This document shows, piece by piece, positions 6,661-16,814 of a stretch of 64,000 bases of DNA. The stretch lies in assembly GCA_964270895.1 (NCBI GenBank), contig OZ185439.1, one strand, 5' to 3'. Source of the stretch: Podarcis filfolensis (taxonomy: Eukaryota). The position numbers and the translations under genes are program-made. The notes under the pieces are model-generated. The model was not told the DNA's origin. It saw only the letters and a program-made list of their open reading frames with translations, and ran no database searches. Position 1 is the stretch's first letter. Every line of letters begins with the position of its first letter.

Positions 6661-9600
6661 AGCGGCGGAGCCTATGCCCACGCTGCCCAGGACGGGAACA
6701 CTCCCGAGGGAGGGGCAAGGAGGGTGCCCTTCCAGGTGCAGGATAGCCACTCGGGTGCAAGGAGTGGCACACATGCCCTGCAGCCGGGGGCAGAGCAAGC
6801 CGCCCATGGGAGACATTTGGCACGCCGCACGCCTGTGACTCCCAAGCCTCCCCCCAGCTGTCAAAGCGAAGGGCAAAGGGTGTGCTGGTCCCACGGGTTA
6901 CCCGAGAGGCGAGGTCCAAGTCCGGTCCATGGTCAAAGGTGCAATGAGGAGGCAGTCCGTAGTAGCTGAAGCTGGGTGCAGGGCAGGGAGTCGGGTGAGG
7001 TCAGGAACAGGTTTGCAAAGAGAACTCTCTCCCAAAAGAGAGCCTCAGTTTCCTTTATTTTTTAGGTAAAACTTGAAATTTAGTTGTTGCTGTTTTAAAA
7101 GAATATATTTAGAGACCCGCCATAACCCAAAGTGCTATCATTTACATAACTTGTGTGTGAACCCAGCACTTCTTTCAGACTATTCACATGTGTGGCTTCT
7201 TTCTTTTGCCATCGACTGCATCCCGATCAAGCTTTGGCTAGCATGGTTGGCTTCCTCCGCCAGATACCTGTGGTTTTCTCACCACCCACCCATGGAATAT
7301 ATTGCCTCCTAAAACCCAGCAAGGTTTTCGTAAGTTCCTAAATCAAAATGCATGCAGAAAAATAAAATAAAAGCCACACGAACCCACCAGCACGATAACA
7401 GCTTGAATTATGCAACTGCGACTCAAAGAGATTGTGTGATGGAATCAAAAATTGATCAAATGTTTTCTGCATAATCCAAGGTGGTGTGGACTCTGAGATG
7501 GGGCACAATGGCGGAACAGGTAATTGTGTGGGTTTTTTTGGGGGGGTGTTCCTAACAGGCTGACACACGTTCCTTTCTGATGAAGGCATGCGAGGTAAAT
7601 AGGAAGGTGGATGCCACAAGCGTCATTAAATAGTGCCTTCTAAATTTTTCTAGCTTTCTTAAAGCAGCAGGTTCAGAAAAGAAAACTCTCTGGTGCTGGA
7701 CCTCAAGGGTCTCATGGCACCTCCCATGTCATGCAGCATAAGAACAAAGTTGCCCAGGGCTGGCTGGAGACCTTTGGCCACCTGGAGCAAAGGGCAAGAT
7801 GGAGCGCTCCTTCCAAATCTGTGTATAAGATCCAACCAGTATTAGAGTCTCACTTCAACAATGGTGATAGGATGGCTTTCTCCACTGCATCCAAGGACAA
7901 CAGGCTAAATCATACCTTATCCTCTAATGCAGGGAAAGCCAACATGGTGCCCTCCATAGGTTCTCCCATTATCCCCCAATGTTCGCCTTCCAAGTTGGAC
8001 CTGACAGGAGCTGGAGAGCTACCCTTGCCCTAATGCCTTGCTGTTGCTCTCTGGTCCCCAGAATATGCTGCCCAATGCAGCCAACGCCTCACTCTGTCCA
8101 ATGGCAGAGCTGGCCCTGAACATCTCTTCAAAGGGATCCATACCCTCCAACATTCCTCTGATGAAAAGAGGGACATCCTATTCCATACCCTCCAACATTT
8201 AGCCAATGAAAATAGAGACGTCCTAAAGAAAAGTGGGACATTCTGGGATCAAATCAGAAACTGGGGCAGCTTCTATAAAACTGGGGACTGTCCCTGGAAA
8301 ATAGGGACATTTGGAGGGTCTGGAGATCTGTGTGAAATTGCCCCAGTGCTCCCTTCAGGGTTGGCAAAAACTTTTTACCAGTCCCTTTAGCTGAACCAGC
8401 TGAAACATCCCAGTTTTGATACGCGGGATATTGGCGGGTATGCTATACACTTAACCTGAAAGTAAACCCTATTGCACTCCAGTAGGGTTTTTTCTGAGTA
8501 TGCCTGCAGAGGATTGTGCTGTTGGCTGATTTATTTGATGTCGCCAGTGGGACCCTTTACAAGACTTGCCTTATATGTATATTGACAACATGCCCAATAA
8601 ATAGATGGGTGCGTGTGACCTCTTAAATACTTTGGACTGGTGCTCACTGGAACGTTTGCTTTTTCAAAATAAATAGACCGCACTCCAAAATAGTCCAGTA
8701 AGCAAAGGACCCGGCCTGTGCTCCATTCTACAAGGTTTGCCAAGATTTCAAGTACTCAGGTCCCGTAAAATGTAGTGATTTCTAATATGGCTACTGCGGT
8801 AAGTGGTTTCTCTGCAGGGAAGCACCAACACAATTCCTTGCCAAGGGTGTAAGGGGCCTTCGATATTGCCTCTCCTGAGGTGGAAGCTGACAGCCAGAGC
8901 CAATGGGAGCTGGCTGAGGTTGGGGGGCAGAGTCCCATTCACCCTATTGAACCAGCCCCCACTGAGGCCTCCCCGAAGCATGGAACCCGCATTGGGGCCT
9001 ACTTTGCAACAAGTCCTCACACAAACACTCCGAAGCAAAGTAGTGAGGGACCATATCTGGCAAAGATCCCTCTCCAGATACTTTTGTAGAGCGCCAAAAA
9101 TAAACCAGAGGACAAAAAAAAAATTTCAAGACAACGGAAACAACTTTTTGAGGGCTTCCTATGGAAAATGCCTGGCCTCCTCGAATGTTGAAGAAACCAA
9201 GTGTGCGGCAAGATTAAATTATATAAAGGCGGTGGTGGGAAAGTGGTACCCACTGAGAAGTTAAATGATTTGCCTAAGGGCAACAGCACGAGGCAAAGAA
9301 GGAAAAGAAACCCAGAGGATGAAAATACCACCATGCAGTAATTACAATCAAAGGACAAATTCAGAAATGCGCAGATCTGCCCTTGCTGTTCTTCAAGAAT
9401 AGCACCTGGCAATCTCCTCTAGGCCACGGCCTTCTTTTAATCTTCTGACCAACCGAGAATGGTGGGTCTGCATTCTTCCAGGTGCCCCTTTTCTTTTTTT
9501 TAACATTTCTTTCTCTCTCTCTCTCTCTTTTTGCAACAATTATTGTCACAAAGAGCAGATTTAACAGCGAGCCTTTTTCTTGTTACAATCCTTCACGAGG

Positions 9601-11441: not shown

Positions 11442-11798
11442 TTAGTATTACTACTAATAATAATAACAAATGTGAAAACATAAAAGCAATTCACCATTAA
11501 AACACACAGTGGCATTAAAACATCCCTAATTAAGGCAATGAAACAAAGAATCAAAAAGCATAACAATTAAAACCGCTTTCAAAGGTTAAAAGAACAAAAC
11601 CAAAAGTCCAGTTTAGGGGAATGGTTGCCTAAACAGGTGTGTCTTCAGGACCCGGCAGCATGCCAATACTGATGGGGCTTCTCATATTTTGGCAGGGAGA
11701 GCCTTTCACAACACTGGCGCCACAGTGAGAAAGCCTGCCTCTGAGTTACCATAAGCCGATAATCATCAGGCTGTGGCTGATGTTCATACTGTACTGCC

Positions 11799-12270
11799 TG
11801 TTGATATCAAGCCTTGTCATTCAGAGGCATTTGGCACTCTCCAGGTGCCCGGCTTGATTCCTTGTTGGCCTCCCCCGTCAGCGACTCCCGGCAAGACAAG
11901 GCGAGGTCTTTATCGGCCGATCCTTCTTCAAACGTGAGAAGAACACAGCCACTCCTCCTCCCTCACTCCCTGCCATCCCCAGGGAGGGGAAAGAGACAGA
12001 CAGAAATGTATTTACATGCCTTTATTTCTGTCTTTCCTCAGTGCAGAGAACAACATGTCTGCACTCTCTGATACCCAGCTGCAGAGTGAGAAATAACTCC
12101 ACCCATGTACTTCCAGTACAGGGTCATGTGACACTCTGAGCTAACATCCGGTGCTCAGTGCACATAATAGACTGTTCCTTGTTCCCACGGTACAGTCCCA
12201 AAACATCAACATCCTGTTTGGCTTTCCAGCCATCTGGAGCACTCAGCAGCATTGCTCCTTTTTCGTAACA
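11799..12270 (-). repeat. 3' LTR of Copia-type element (472 bp)
   Basis: Direct repeat of 14831-15302, preceded on minus by the PPT; AATAAA on minus at 12021-12026. Confidence 0.95.
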
Positions 12271-14130
12271 ACCTCCCCCAAAAGAATCAATGCGTGTTGC
12301 GGCAAGCAAAGCGTGATCCAGAGAAGAAAACAAACAGTTGTTATACACATAACACTCCCCTGTTGTTTCAGTTCCACCCTTGGAACTACCCGCCACTGGT
12401 TTCCCCAGTGTACCTCTCTGGTTGTCTGGCTTCCAAGGAATGAGTGCATCTGCATTACCTTGGCTAGCAACTCTCTGTTGTGTCTTTGTCTCTGACTTAG
12501 ACACAGCTCCAACCTGTCCTCGGTTGTGTACAACAGCAACACATGCAACAGCTAAGTTAGCATACTCTTCTGAGTACCTTTTGGGTGGTTCACCCTTTGT
12601 GACTCTCACAGACCTGCGTATGAGGTGCTGATCCTCTCTGCTCACTGGTTCTGTCTCAGGACTCCTAGGAGAACCAGTTCCAACAGTAAACAGTGGTTCA
12701 ACCTTCACCTGTGAAGGTCTATCCATTGTGTGAGATTTCCTCTCAATGACTGTGACAACAGAGCTCTCTGAGCTATCACTGTCGCTCTCAGTACCACTGT
12801 ACTCTGTGAAATCATCATCATCATCTGAATCGTCCTCTGTGGGAAATGTGTGTGCTATCACTCTCTCCTTTTCAGGAGCATTCTCTAGAAATTTTGTGAG
12901 AATCACCTGACCAGATTCAGACAAAATTACTCTGTAGAGACCCTTTTCATATCCCACAAAAATGCCTCTGGCATTCTTTACTCCACCTGGAGCTTCTGTC
13001 CTCACATGAGACCCAAAAACCTTGAAATGGGCAACAGAAGGTTTTCTCTGGAACAGTTTCTCAAAAGGAGAACTTCCCAACTCTTTCGAAACCTTTCTTA
13101 CCCACGCATAACTAAACGACATGAGTGACTCCGCCCAGAACTCATGTGGCAGATGTGAACTAAGCAATTGCGCATTCATTCCCTTTTGCAATTCTTTGTT
13201 CACTTTTACACAAACACCCCTGTTCCACGCTTCCGCTGAAACAGCAATCTTGTGTCTGATCCCCTTCTTCTGCAGGAACCTCTGGAAATCCTGTAAAAGA
13301 AAAATCTGCTTCTCATCTGTCAAAAGACAATCAATGTTAGCATCATGCATGTCTTTAACCTTGTCACAAAACTCTTGAAACCTTTCCAAGGCTTCCTGTG
13401 GTTTCTTTAACACATAAACCCAGACAAAGTTAGAGAAATGATCCACACACACAAGATAAAATCTTGCATTGCCTCTAGATGGTTCTAGAGGACCAATCAC
13501 ATCAGCATACACCCGCTGAAACGCTCTGTCGACCCTGGCCACCTTCTTGGCGCTCGTTTTGGTCACACCTGCAAGAGAAATCATGTTAGACTCAGAATTA
13601 CATTCCATGTAATCACTTTGGTCAAAAGTCAACAAATACAGTCCATCTTTCTGTCTGGCAGAAAGATATAACTCTCCATCTTTGAAGATCTCGCAGCTCT
13701 TATCATCATAGGACAGTCTCAGTCCTTTCTTTGCAATCTGCGAAACACTCAGCAGATTGAACTTCAGTTCAGGAACCAAGTAAACATTGTGTATTGTCAA
13801 GTTCAGACTCTTAAGATAGACAGTGCCAACCCTGGTCGCTTCCAGCTTCTGACCGTTGGCTTGTTCCACAGCGAAGCTTTGCTTCTTAAACGTCGAAAAG
13901 AGTCCTCTGTGCGGGGACATATGAAAATTACAGCCCGTATCGATTACAAAAGAGTGTCCAACATCTGGCGTGGTTCCTTTCGCCATCAGGGCCTTTGCAG
14001 GTTTCACCGAAGACTTGGTATGACCTTTGCCTGCTGCCTCAGGCTTTGCTGAGCGGCCCTTCGCTCCTTTCGGCTGGCGTGGCTTCTTGCAGTTCCGCTG
14101 AAGATGCCCAGTCTGTCCGCAATTGTAGCA
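12124..14130 (-). CDS. Copia-type polyprotein ORF: CCHC knuckle, aspartic protease, degenerate integrase + SH3-like domain, acidic tail; no RT/RNase H (first ATG at 13986)
   Basis: CYNCGQTGHLQRNC (14089-14130, in frame upstream of the tracked ORF); FVIDTGCNFHM; NVYLVPELKFNLLSV; VYADVIGP; LLTDEK; FKVFGSH...GIFVGYE..YRV; IRRSVRVTKGEPPKRY. No YxDD motif. Confidence 0.88.
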   Translation of the reverse strand, partial: CYNCGQTGHLQRNCKKPRQPKGAKGRSAKPEAAGKGHTKSSVKPAKALMAKGTTPDVGHSFVIDTGCNFHMSPHRGLFSTFKKQSFAVEQANGQKLEATRVGTVYLKSLNLTIHNVYLVPELKFNLLSVSQIAKKGLRLSYDDKSCEIFKDGELYLSARQKDGLYLLTFDQSDYMECNSESNMISLAGVTKTSAKKVARVDRAFQRVYADVIGPLEPSRGNARFYLVCVDHFSNFVWVYVLKKPQEALERFQEFCDKVKDMHDANIDCLLTDEKQIFLLQDFQRFLQKKGIRHKIAVSAEAWNRGVCVKVNKELQKGMNAQLLSSHLPHEFWAESLMSFSYAWVRKVSKELGSSPFEKLFQRKPSVAHFKVFGSHVRTEAPGGVKNARGIFVGYEKGLYRVILSESGQVILTKFLENAPEKERVIAHTFPTEDDSDDDDDFTEYSGTESDSDSSESSVVTVIERKSHTMDRPSQVKVEPLFTVGTGSPRSPETEPVSREDQHLIRRSVRVTKGEPPKRYSEEYANLAVACVAVVHNRGQVGAVSKSETKTQQRVASQGNADALIPWKPDNQRGTLGKPVAGSSKGGTETTGECYVYNNCLFSSLDHALLAATRIDSFGGGCYEKGAMLLSAPDGWKAKQDVDVLGLYRGNKEQSIMCTEHRMLAQSVT
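12271..12279 (-). promoter_or_regulatory. Polypurine tract
   Basis: GGGGGAGGT directly abutting the TG of the 3' LTR. Confidence 0.85.
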
Positions 14131-14818
14131 TCAGACAACGTTCAAAGCTACAGCATCCTCTCCAGTAGCAACATCAGTGGGGGAATTAGAACTCCGTTCT
14201 TTCCCTCCCCCTGTCCTTCACTTCCAGTGCAGCATGCCGGCTGTGTTCATCCTGAACCACGGCACTCAGGGGCACTCCCCCCTTCTTGGCATCCATGCTG
14301 AATCCAAGCCTCAGCTCTCCACTCTCGAGCTAGTTAAAATCCAAAAGCTCCTTTTGAGCTGTCTTTCTGCCTGTCTCTCAGGCAGGCAATCTCCAAGCTG
14401 TCTCAAAGTCAAAACAACTTTCGCTTTCCCGGCTCTGACTGAGCCAGCCCCAGGTGTCAGTAGTTTTCCACTGGCCTGACTGTCGTTGCTTAGCAACTGT
14501 GCATACCTCTCATCCTTATCTCGCCGCAAGAATTTCTGGTATGCAAGCCTTTACTCTCAGAGCTGTTTTTTTTTTTCAAACGCAGCTCTCGTGAACCAGA
14601 GAATAAATCAATCTGCATTCACACTTTTAGCCCGATATTCAGCATACCTTTTTGGGGCTCCGTTGCTTGGAAAACACCCCCTCTTGGGGCCAGCCGTCTG
14701 TTCAGCTTCTGGCTGCAATTGCAGACGTTATCTTCTTTCCTTGGTGCAGAGGATGGCACACGATTCATCAACCTCTCACCTCTCATGCTGATTCCCATGG
14801 ATCAGATAACCAGCAGCG

Positions 14819-14828
14819 TCTGCTACCA
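14819..14828 (-). promoter_or_regulatory. Primer-binding site complementary to initiator tRNA-Met 3' end
   Basis: TGGTAGCAGA 2 nt after the 5' LTR; complements ...UCUGCUACCA of vertebrate tRNA-iMet (recalled sequence), the usual Copia primer. Confidence 0.85.
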
Positions 14829-14830
14829 TA

Positions 14831-15302
14831 TGTTGATATCAAGCCTTGTCATTCAGAGGCATTTGGCACTCTCCAGGTGCCCGGCTTGATTCCTTGTTGG
14901 CCTCCCCCGTCAGCGACTCCCGGCAAGACAAGGCGAGGTCTTTATCGGCCGATCCTTCTTCAAACGTGAGAAGAACACAGCCACTCCTCCTCCCTCACTC
15001 CCTGCCATCCCCAGGGAGGGGAAAGAGACAGACAGAAATGTATTTACATGCCTTTATTTCTGTCTTTCCTCAGTGCAGAGAACAACATGTCTGCACTCTC
15101 TGATACCCAGCTGCAGAGTGAGAAATAACTCCACCCATGTACTTCCAGTACAGGGTCATGTGACACTCTGAGCTAACATCCGGTGCTCAGTGCACATAAT
15201 AGACTGTTCCTTGTTCCCACGGTACAGTCCCAAAACATCAACATCCTGTTTGGCTTTCCAGCCATCTGGAGCACTCAGCAGCATTGCTCCTTTTTCGTAA
15301 CA
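14831..15302 (-). repeat. 5' LTR of Copia-type element (472 bp)
   Basis: TGTTAC...TCAACA on minus; no difference from 11799-12270 found by eye; ORF-track peptides at 11814 and 14846 are identical. Confidence 0.95.
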
Positions 15303-16814
15303 CTGCCCTTAGTGACCAGTGAAATTGGTTGAATATGGGGCTTATCTGCACTTACCTTCCATCCGCTCTTTCTAGGCACGGTCCCCAATTTAAACCTCCT
15401 TCCATTTTTGCTCTGGAGCTTTCTTCAAGAAAACCCACTCTTTTGAGCTCCTTCAAAGCAAACAGCAATCCATGGAACCCCAAATTGGTGTTGGCTCCGA
15501 CTGAGCACTAAAGTGCAGGGTTTTGTGAGGAAATCTCTAAGGCAAGGTGCGGGGCGGGATGCTCCGACATTGAGTTTTCTTTTTTTTACTATTTTTACCA
15601 TCACAGGGTATAAGGTGAAATATACAGTAGATTTCCAGGCCTTGGCAACTGCTTACAGGCTTCATCAATGCTTCCACAGGCACTTAGGAGGAGAAGCATT
15701 ATGAAGACCATCTGACGTCTCAGTTTTTCCTCCTAAACACTCACGTATCTGGATCTATCTTGTAGACACTATGCCTTCTGGACATTCCCAAAGACGATTT
15801 GTGTCCTGTTCTCCAGGCGTTCCCAATTAAATTTCCACAGATCAGGCCGGCTCCATATTCTTTTGGAAAATTAAGAGTTTTCACTTAGAGCACAAGGTAG
15901 TCCTAATCAAACCTGAGGCTGCCTTGGGCTTGCCTCCCAAGCATAATGCCCCCTTTTTAATGAGCTCTGGATTTCGTCTGAGCAATGTTTTGAATATCAT
16001 CACCAGCCATTTCTGTGAAGCGTTCTATCAAACATGGCTTCCCAACTCTTCGCAGGTCCCTGCACAGAGGGTGGGTGCTGACCGCCTCATAAAGAACTCC
16101 TACGCTTTCCTTAACAATGGAAAGCTGGAAAAAGTTAAAGTTAAAATATGCCGTTCTTGTTAAGGACCATTCTAGCGCTGGGAATGAATTAAATTGCGGA
16201 AACGGCCTCAAATCCTGGCGGGTGAACTGTCCCATTCTGTAGATGAAAGTTCAAGGCTTCATTGTCCTTCATGGGGATGCGGCTGAGATCCATGAGGGGA
16301 AATGGCACATGAGGGAACATGCCGAGCCATTGAGGCACCATTAGATACCTTTCTCTATTCTCGCCCACAGCGCTATCATTTCACTTAAAAAAAAAAAGTA
16401 TGAAAAACCCCAATGCAGAATTTCATATTAGCCACCTAAGCTAAAATGGCCTACAGACATTTTACTTCATGGAGGGATCAGAACATTAGCTTTTCCATCA
16501 TCAAAGAGAAGGGACACATTTTCAATTATACTAAAACATACAAAGTGATATTTCAAGGAAGGATGAGGAAAACAGGGCTCGATGTCATCCTCACTCAAAC
16601 AAAGACATGGTGACAAGCCTGCTTGCTGTTTTCTTATGCTTTTCATACTTTTCGTTTCTAAAGTTGTAAACTTCCTCGGACACCTTCAAACAGGCTTCGC
16701 CAACAGAGTGCCCTCTGCCCCAGCCAGCATGGCCCAAGGGTCAGGGATGGCTGGAGACATGGTTCGGAATATACGAAGGGCACCATATTAGCGAAGGTAG
16801 CTTTAACAAGGGGC

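Follow-up and report, generated by a model that had tools for sequence, protein, structure and literature searches.

The host element and its relatives

The window analysed here, a 64,000-nt stretch of Podarcis filfolensis DNA (GenBank assembly GCA_964270895.1, contig OZ185439.1), carries a 3504-bp LTR element on its minus strand (11799-15302), and all features of this element described below lie on that strand. The two LTRs (5′ LTR, 14831-15302; 3′ LTR, 11799-12270) are each 472 bp long with TG...CA ends and are 100% identical, and the same five bases, GGCAG, stand immediately outside both as a target site duplication (TSD; upstream copy at 15303-15307, downstream copy at 11794-11798). Two bases past the end of the 5′ LTR lies a core primer binding site (PBS; 14819-14828), TGGTAGCAGA, complementary to tRNA-iMet positions 67-76, and a polypurine tract, GGGGGAGG, stands ahead of the 3′ LTR (12272-12279). 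The element thus has the nucleotide features of the Ty1/Copia group: paired LTRs with a TSD, a tRNA-iMet PBS by the 5′ LTR and a polypurine tract by the 3′ LTR. An ORF of 627 codons (12124-14007), which extends into the 3′ LTR, encodes a protease-like beta-barrel, an integrase core and an SH3-like domain, and a CCHC knuckle lies immediately upstream of it. Pol_BBD, rve and the SH3-like domain are the sole Pol domains in the element, and the order PR-IN-RT-RNase H is not found; reverse transcriptase (RT), RNase H and the N-terminal part of gag are absent from its coding region. Judged from this sequence organisation, the element is a deleted, non-autonomous Copia derivative that was inserted very recently.

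The nearest proteins are Copia-type and come from Podarcis lilfordi, P. muralis and Zootoca vivipara. Close proteins are few, with only 5 among 1.84 billion representative proteins and identities of at most 31% beyond these. Protein searches that included this set found no autonomous master copy, and word searches for more relatives, with one relative protein and with a 200-aa piece, gave no useful yield; an exhaustive search added one close protein, whose 3.1-kb contig begins within the leader and has no PBS. The element family is high-copy in contigs of four public runs. For comparison, we used a related non-autonomous element of P. lilfordi (L001), whose LTR and leader are about 72% identical to those of the window, and a Z. 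vivipara locus (L002) that holds two elements in tandem with one LTR in common and a protein 43% identical.

A sense copy of the 3′ half of tRNA-iMet in the leader

A preliminary description of this DNA had reported that, about 40 nt downstream of the PBS, the leader reads as the CCA-ended 3′ half of the element's own primer tRNA. Upon inspection, the segment reads as claimed at 14776-14742 on the minus strand, 42 nt past the PBS, and the alignment to tRNA-iMet is upheld, with 29 of 36 columns identical over positions 42-76, the CCA included. This sense copy (14742-14776), hereafter arm B, departs from the tRNA by substitutions at positions 48 and 53, by TGTG in place of AAA at 58-60, and by loss of T72. 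The 24 nt at the end of tRNA-iMet are documented (PMC11485271); for the first 11 nt of the query (tRNA-iMet 42-76) we assumed a sequence, which the antisense copies of both L001 and L002 support.

Arm B obtained a Smith-Waterman score of 33. When the 824-nt leader was shuffled 2000 times with its dinucleotides preserved, scores averaged 14.8 (standard deviation 1.9) and never exceeded 25; across both strands of the 64-kb window, the next scores were 27, for the PBS itself, and then 21 or less. The segment moreover adjoins a PBS for the same tRNA and has a homologous copy at the equivalent place in L001. Against this, the silence of two detectors is what would be expected of a chance resemblance, ARAGORN calling no tRNA at arm B and Rfam giving no tRNA hit there at E-values up to 10, and we regard chance as a negligible explanation: the match to tRNA-iMet is real. 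It does not represent a tRNA gene or pseudogene, since there is no cloverleaf and only the 3′ half (positions 42-76) is present. A full but degenerate tRNA spanning 14828-14742, with CCAT as its anticodon, was also considered and discarded, because its 5′ part is an antisense T arm, as L001 and L002 make clear. Elsewhere in the element, an exact 13-nt sense match to what we take to be the tRNA-iMet D-loop lies in the integrase ORF (13238-13226, minus strand); it has no extension, is lost in L001, and is probably due to chance. The LTRs of the element were also examined for a 15-nt sense stretch of the tRNA, and they contain none.

In contigs of the four public runs, the sole well-supported variant within arm B, a subfamily variant, is at 14765, where the tRNA-like G dominates two runs and the A of the window dominates a third; A at this position breaks T-stem pair 53-61. 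In run X5, summed contig depth over the 27-nt bin 14770-14796 was 10 to 25 times that of its neighbours, and the arm's centre and start may be common to another, more abundant repeat in that organism.

Layout of the two arms in the window and in related leaders

From its position and sequence, arm B can be read as one arm of a tRNA-derived inverted repeat, the other (arm A) being an extended PBS. Guided by the antisense copies in L001 and Zootoca, the 42 nt that separate the PBS from arm B are readable as a worn antisense copy: the remainder of arm A (14788-14818) would correspond to antisense tRNA-iMet from about position 66 to 41, according to its alignment with the antisense tRNA and its homologous position in L001 and L002. 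The T-arm box TGGTT.TC.GATCCAT is still present in it. Including the core PBS, arm A is worn but matches 30 of 41 columns of the antisense tRNA; the part outside the core is only marginal against shuffles (47/2000). The centre of the repeat (14777-14787) consists of CATG, which is common to the window and L001, and the first unit of a 7-nt tandem duplication of GAGAGGT (14784-14778 and 14777-14771), the second unit of which enters the sense copy. Both arms terminate near tRNA position 41/42, at the foot of three G-C pairs in the initiator anticodon stem, which is a plausible RT pause site. An inverted-repeat search of the window reports none at the arms, Watson-Crick complementarity between arm A and arm B is no better than in shuffles, and the inverted repeat does not exceed what common descent from the tRNA gives. 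An ATG that overlaps the start of the PBS (CATATGG) opens a 17-codon uORF (14777-14830, minus strand), which stops at a TGA within the GAGAGGT duplication.

The P. lilfordi element has the same order in clearer form, namely an antisense copy, CATG, and a worn sense copy with a CCA end. Its PBS is a perfect antisense match to the tRNA over 23 nt, as far as position 54 (L001:4610-4632), and the antisense copy overall matches 34 of 39 columns and reaches about position 41. The perfect match runs five bases beyond the canonical m1A58 stop. Each of the two Zootoca elements has a fresh PBS, of 18 nt in one and 11 nt in the other, and a few bases past it an older antisense T-arm copy that reaches about position 45 or 41 (L002:7675-7724 and L002:10856-10905). 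Because fresh PBS and older extended copy stand in tandem in each, tRNA-templated sequence seems, as far as these leaders tell, to have been added repeatedly at the U5/PBS border. Neither Zootoca element has the sense copy, so that among the four leaders compared arm B occurs in two lineages, the window and L001. Homology between the Zootoca leader past the antisense arm and the Podarcis leader past the sense arm was suggested by eye and was unsupported by alignment. A 282-nt contig from run X15, a fifth organism, matches leader positions 14590-14755 and ends this match inside the sense arm; the contig continues for 117 nt unlike the window, so this relative differs upstream of the last 14 nt of the arm.

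Conservation did not single out the sense arm. Between the window and L001, arm A was 62% identical and arm B 65%, compared with 62% for the final 100 nt of U5 and with 66% and then 74% for the two 100-nt blocks that follow the arms, which places arm B at the background rate of the leader (65% against 62-74%). The arms wear unequally and in opposite ways, with about 10 events in arm A and 3 in arm B of the window, compared with about 3 and 8 in L001, all of these being small counts; the L001 helix is also bulged. Such unequal and opposite wear hints, at the level of sequence comparison, that a perfect 35-bp hairpin over the PBS was a burden now being relieved, and at selection on the hairpin, at least toward weakening.

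Predicted folding and access to the PBS

The preliminary description had further proposed that the 3′ end of the segment pairs with the PBS through 9 bp and one bulge. This duplex is physically possible (-13.0 kcal/mol), but it is not the favoured fold in the window copy, where forcing the helix is predicted to cost 5.5 kcal/mol. In a 95-nt context the pair probability amounts to 0.37, and in contexts of at least 160 nt it is close to zero, which argues against an anti-PBS switch or shield in this copy. All folds used natural sequences, among them the G variant at 14765 found in the runs. In every folded context of the window, arm B is instead predicted to form a local stem-loop (14743-14780; -13.6 kcal/mol, z -2.1) in which GGUGAGAGG pairs with CCUCU-G-CACC around the T-arm remnant. 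The partner strand, GGUGAGAGG, arose from the 7-nt tandem duplication. Downstream of arm B, CGTCTGC (14721-14727) has its complement, GCAGACG, in the 3′ portion of the PBS (14816-14822, minus strand) and closes a three-way junction around both arms in folds of at least 150 nt; it is absent from L001.

In L001, by comparison, arm B is predicted to cover the PBS in every context, as the minimum-energy fold with a probability of about 0.98 (z -2.2). On these models, the statement that arm B can hide the PBS is true of the family and not of the window copy. Arm B can compete with the tRNA for the PBS, as it does in the predicted L001 fold, while in the window, where the extended PBS is worn, the 7-nt duplication would give the arm its own partner and leave the PBS free. 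Predicted binding to the leader is much stronger for a free tRNA half than for arm B (-35.5 versus -22.4 kcal/mol). The modelled effect of arm B on priming would be at most a mild, lineage-dependent brake.

Origin of the sense arm

We consider it probable, at roughly 60%, that arm B is a fossil of an RT copying the mature primer tRNA, with no demonstrated function, and that a successful non-autonomous Copia family has carried it along in its leader. That the copy was captured from a mature tRNA had already been suggested in the preliminary description, and the details bear it out: the copy ends exactly at the non-templated CCA and has one mismatch block, at T-loop positions 58-60. RTs are known to stop or misincorporate at m1A58 (PMC8599865, PMC4787781). 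The L001 copy has a T right after G57, as the window does, so the scar at 58-60 predates the split of the two lineages. Counting against a relic, the arm has been kept in two lineages of a high-copy family, both of them recently active by the evidence of their identical or near-identical LTRs; such survival would also be expected of a useful element. The opposite wear of the two arms, with its hint of selection on the hairpin, counts on the same side.

For the fossil to form, mature tRNA-iMet would have served as an RT template, and there are two candidate routes. In route (a), minus-strand synthesis on the leader would be interrupted by an RT jump onto a packaged tRNA at its 3′ end, followed by copying to the foot of the G+C-rich anticodon stem and a return beside the extended PBS. 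In route (b), plus-strand strong-stop synthesis would pass m1A58 to the same point and the new strand would snap back. Both routes fit and would be indistinguishable on present data. One thin hint concerns relative age: arm A of the window and the old Zootoca copy share two odd features, GCT(G)C ahead of TGGTT and a G across from position 49, and the fresh copy in L001 has neither. The sharing of these features with the old Zootoca copy would make arm A older than arm B and would favour route (a).

Functional readings weighed against a relic

None of the roles suggested in the preliminary description, namely a switch, a shield, a self-primer or a PBS for an antisense transcript, is supported for the window copy; for the last of these, no LTR end adjoins the segment on the plus strand. 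Taken across the family, a selected anti-PBS cis-regulator, which would keep the PBS masked pending its opening by Gag or a chaperone, or would shield it from 3′ tRNA fragments, nevertheless has several observations in its favour. The PBS:segment hairpin is the predicted minimum-energy fold in L001, with the probability and z given above, four of the six substitutions in its helix retain G-U pairs, the arm has persisted in two active lineages, and targeting of PBSs by 3′ tRNA fragments (3′-tRFs) is an established pressure (PMC7472051). However, the four-of-six count is not significant (binomial estimate about 0.07), CpG transitions account for two of the four changes that preserve G-U pairs, and a 1-nt deletion bulges the helix in both lineages. 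Since, in addition, pairing in the window copy is near zero in context and costly to force, the arm diverges at background rate, and the Zootoca relatives manage without a sense arm, we regard such a regulator as unlikely. A different gain could come from mimicry, whereby the T arm and acceptor 3′ strand would borrow a helper's tRNA-packaging or RT-binding contacts in aid of the non-autonomous RNA. The family has no RT yet is high-copy and was recently mobile, and, with G at 14765, the predicted fold of the arm has a 9-bp stem on which a T-stem-like helix of 4 bp, with an 8-nt loop, is stacked. Dependence of Ty1 packaging and initiation on the T and D arms of the tRNA (PMC4974528) and the tRNA-like element beside the HIV-1 PBS (PMC11181671) offer precedents of a kind. 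But the T-loop, the part likeliest to be recognised, is the least tRNA-like, being scarred at 58-60 and largely lost from L001. One variant to have spread disrupts pair 53-61, the predicted fold does not leave the CCA free, and no helper element is known for comparison, which makes mimicry a distant prospect.

A built-in primer of the Tf1 type, in which a cut after the CCA would release a 3′ OH to fold back onto the PBS, appears scarcely tenable. It is compatible with a 3′ end that is complementary to the PBS (9 bp and a bulge) and with a CCA end at 14742, but cleavage there would sever the leader from the rest of the genome, the bulge at 72/73 is present in both lineages, and the 10- to 23-nt tRNA PBS has been kept perfect, as expected if a real tRNA primes each cycle. 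The CCA, moreover, lies within the predicted local stem, with its CC buried, and there is no mark of a cleavage site, so the self-priming proposed in the preliminary description found no footing here. The broader proposition, that selection maintains the sense tRNA half as a cis element of a parasitic, RT-less Copia family, either to tune PBS access with respect to the tRNA or 3′ tRFs or to borrow helper contacts for packaging and priming in trans, we judge decidedly improbable. If true, it would make this the first primer mimic of so literal a kind in any LTR element.

Comparison with known systems

Tf1 and sushi elements resemble the present case in that the element's own RNA is partly complementary to its PBS. 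In Tf1, the transcript supplies its own primer, its 5′ end being cut off for this purpose when paired with the PBS, and there is no tRNA PBS. Here, unlike Tf1, the PBS is perfect for tRNA-iMet, and the complementary piece is not the 5′ end of the RNA and lies 42 nt downstream of the PBS.

A close likeness for arm A is Ty1, whose bipartite or extended PBS comprises complements of the T and D arms of tRNA-iMet (PMC4974528). Like Ty1, the present element belongs to the Copia group, is primed by tRNA-iMet, and has a 10-nt core PBS, which is followed downstream by what can be read as worn T-arm complementarity; an extended PBS of the Ty1 type fits arm A here and has a clear form in L001 and Zootoca. 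Unlike the Ty1 boxes, which are all antisense to the tRNA, arm B is sense and pairs with the boxes, not with the tRNA. Read-through of m1A58, by which RT extends its copy of the tRNA past the canonical 18 nt (PMC8599865), explains the extended antisense arm and is the first step to the sense arm in one origin model. In retroviruses the read-through product is described as a dead end (PMC8599865), whereas here it has been inherited and has spread to high copy together with a mirror copy.

In HIV-1, a piece of the genome beside the PBS also resembles the primer tRNA in the sense orientation (PMC11181671). The HIV-1 element, however, mimics an anticodon arm by shape and binds LysRS (PMC11181671), while arm B reproduces letter by letter a part of the tRNA that comprises only the variable loop, T arm and acceptor 3′ strand, without sign of selection. 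Targeting by 3′-tRFs involves the same tRNA 3′ end and the same target site, but it is a host defence acting in trans (PMC7472051), whereas the present element has the tRNA end within its own sequence; that arm B shields against 3′-tRFs is conjecture. In the part of the literature that we covered, no paper describing a sense primer-tRNA half beside a PBS was found.

Implications

Arm B provides a natural record of RT errors made in vivo on a primer tRNA. Lacertid Copia leaders hold tRNA-iMet-derived sequence in both orientations, fresh next to old, and so offer datable cases of m1A58 read-through, template switching or snap-back. In predicted folds, the PBS is covered in L001 and free in the window, a natural contrast for the study of tolerated PBS occlusion in Copia. 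On the practical side, tRNA-fragment reads will be drawn to the many genomic sense tRNA-iMet 3′ ends, which can cause errors in the small-RNA and tRNA annotation of these genomes. Outside the element, the window also contains a 44-nt unit in two tandem copies that are 82% alike (8137-8225).
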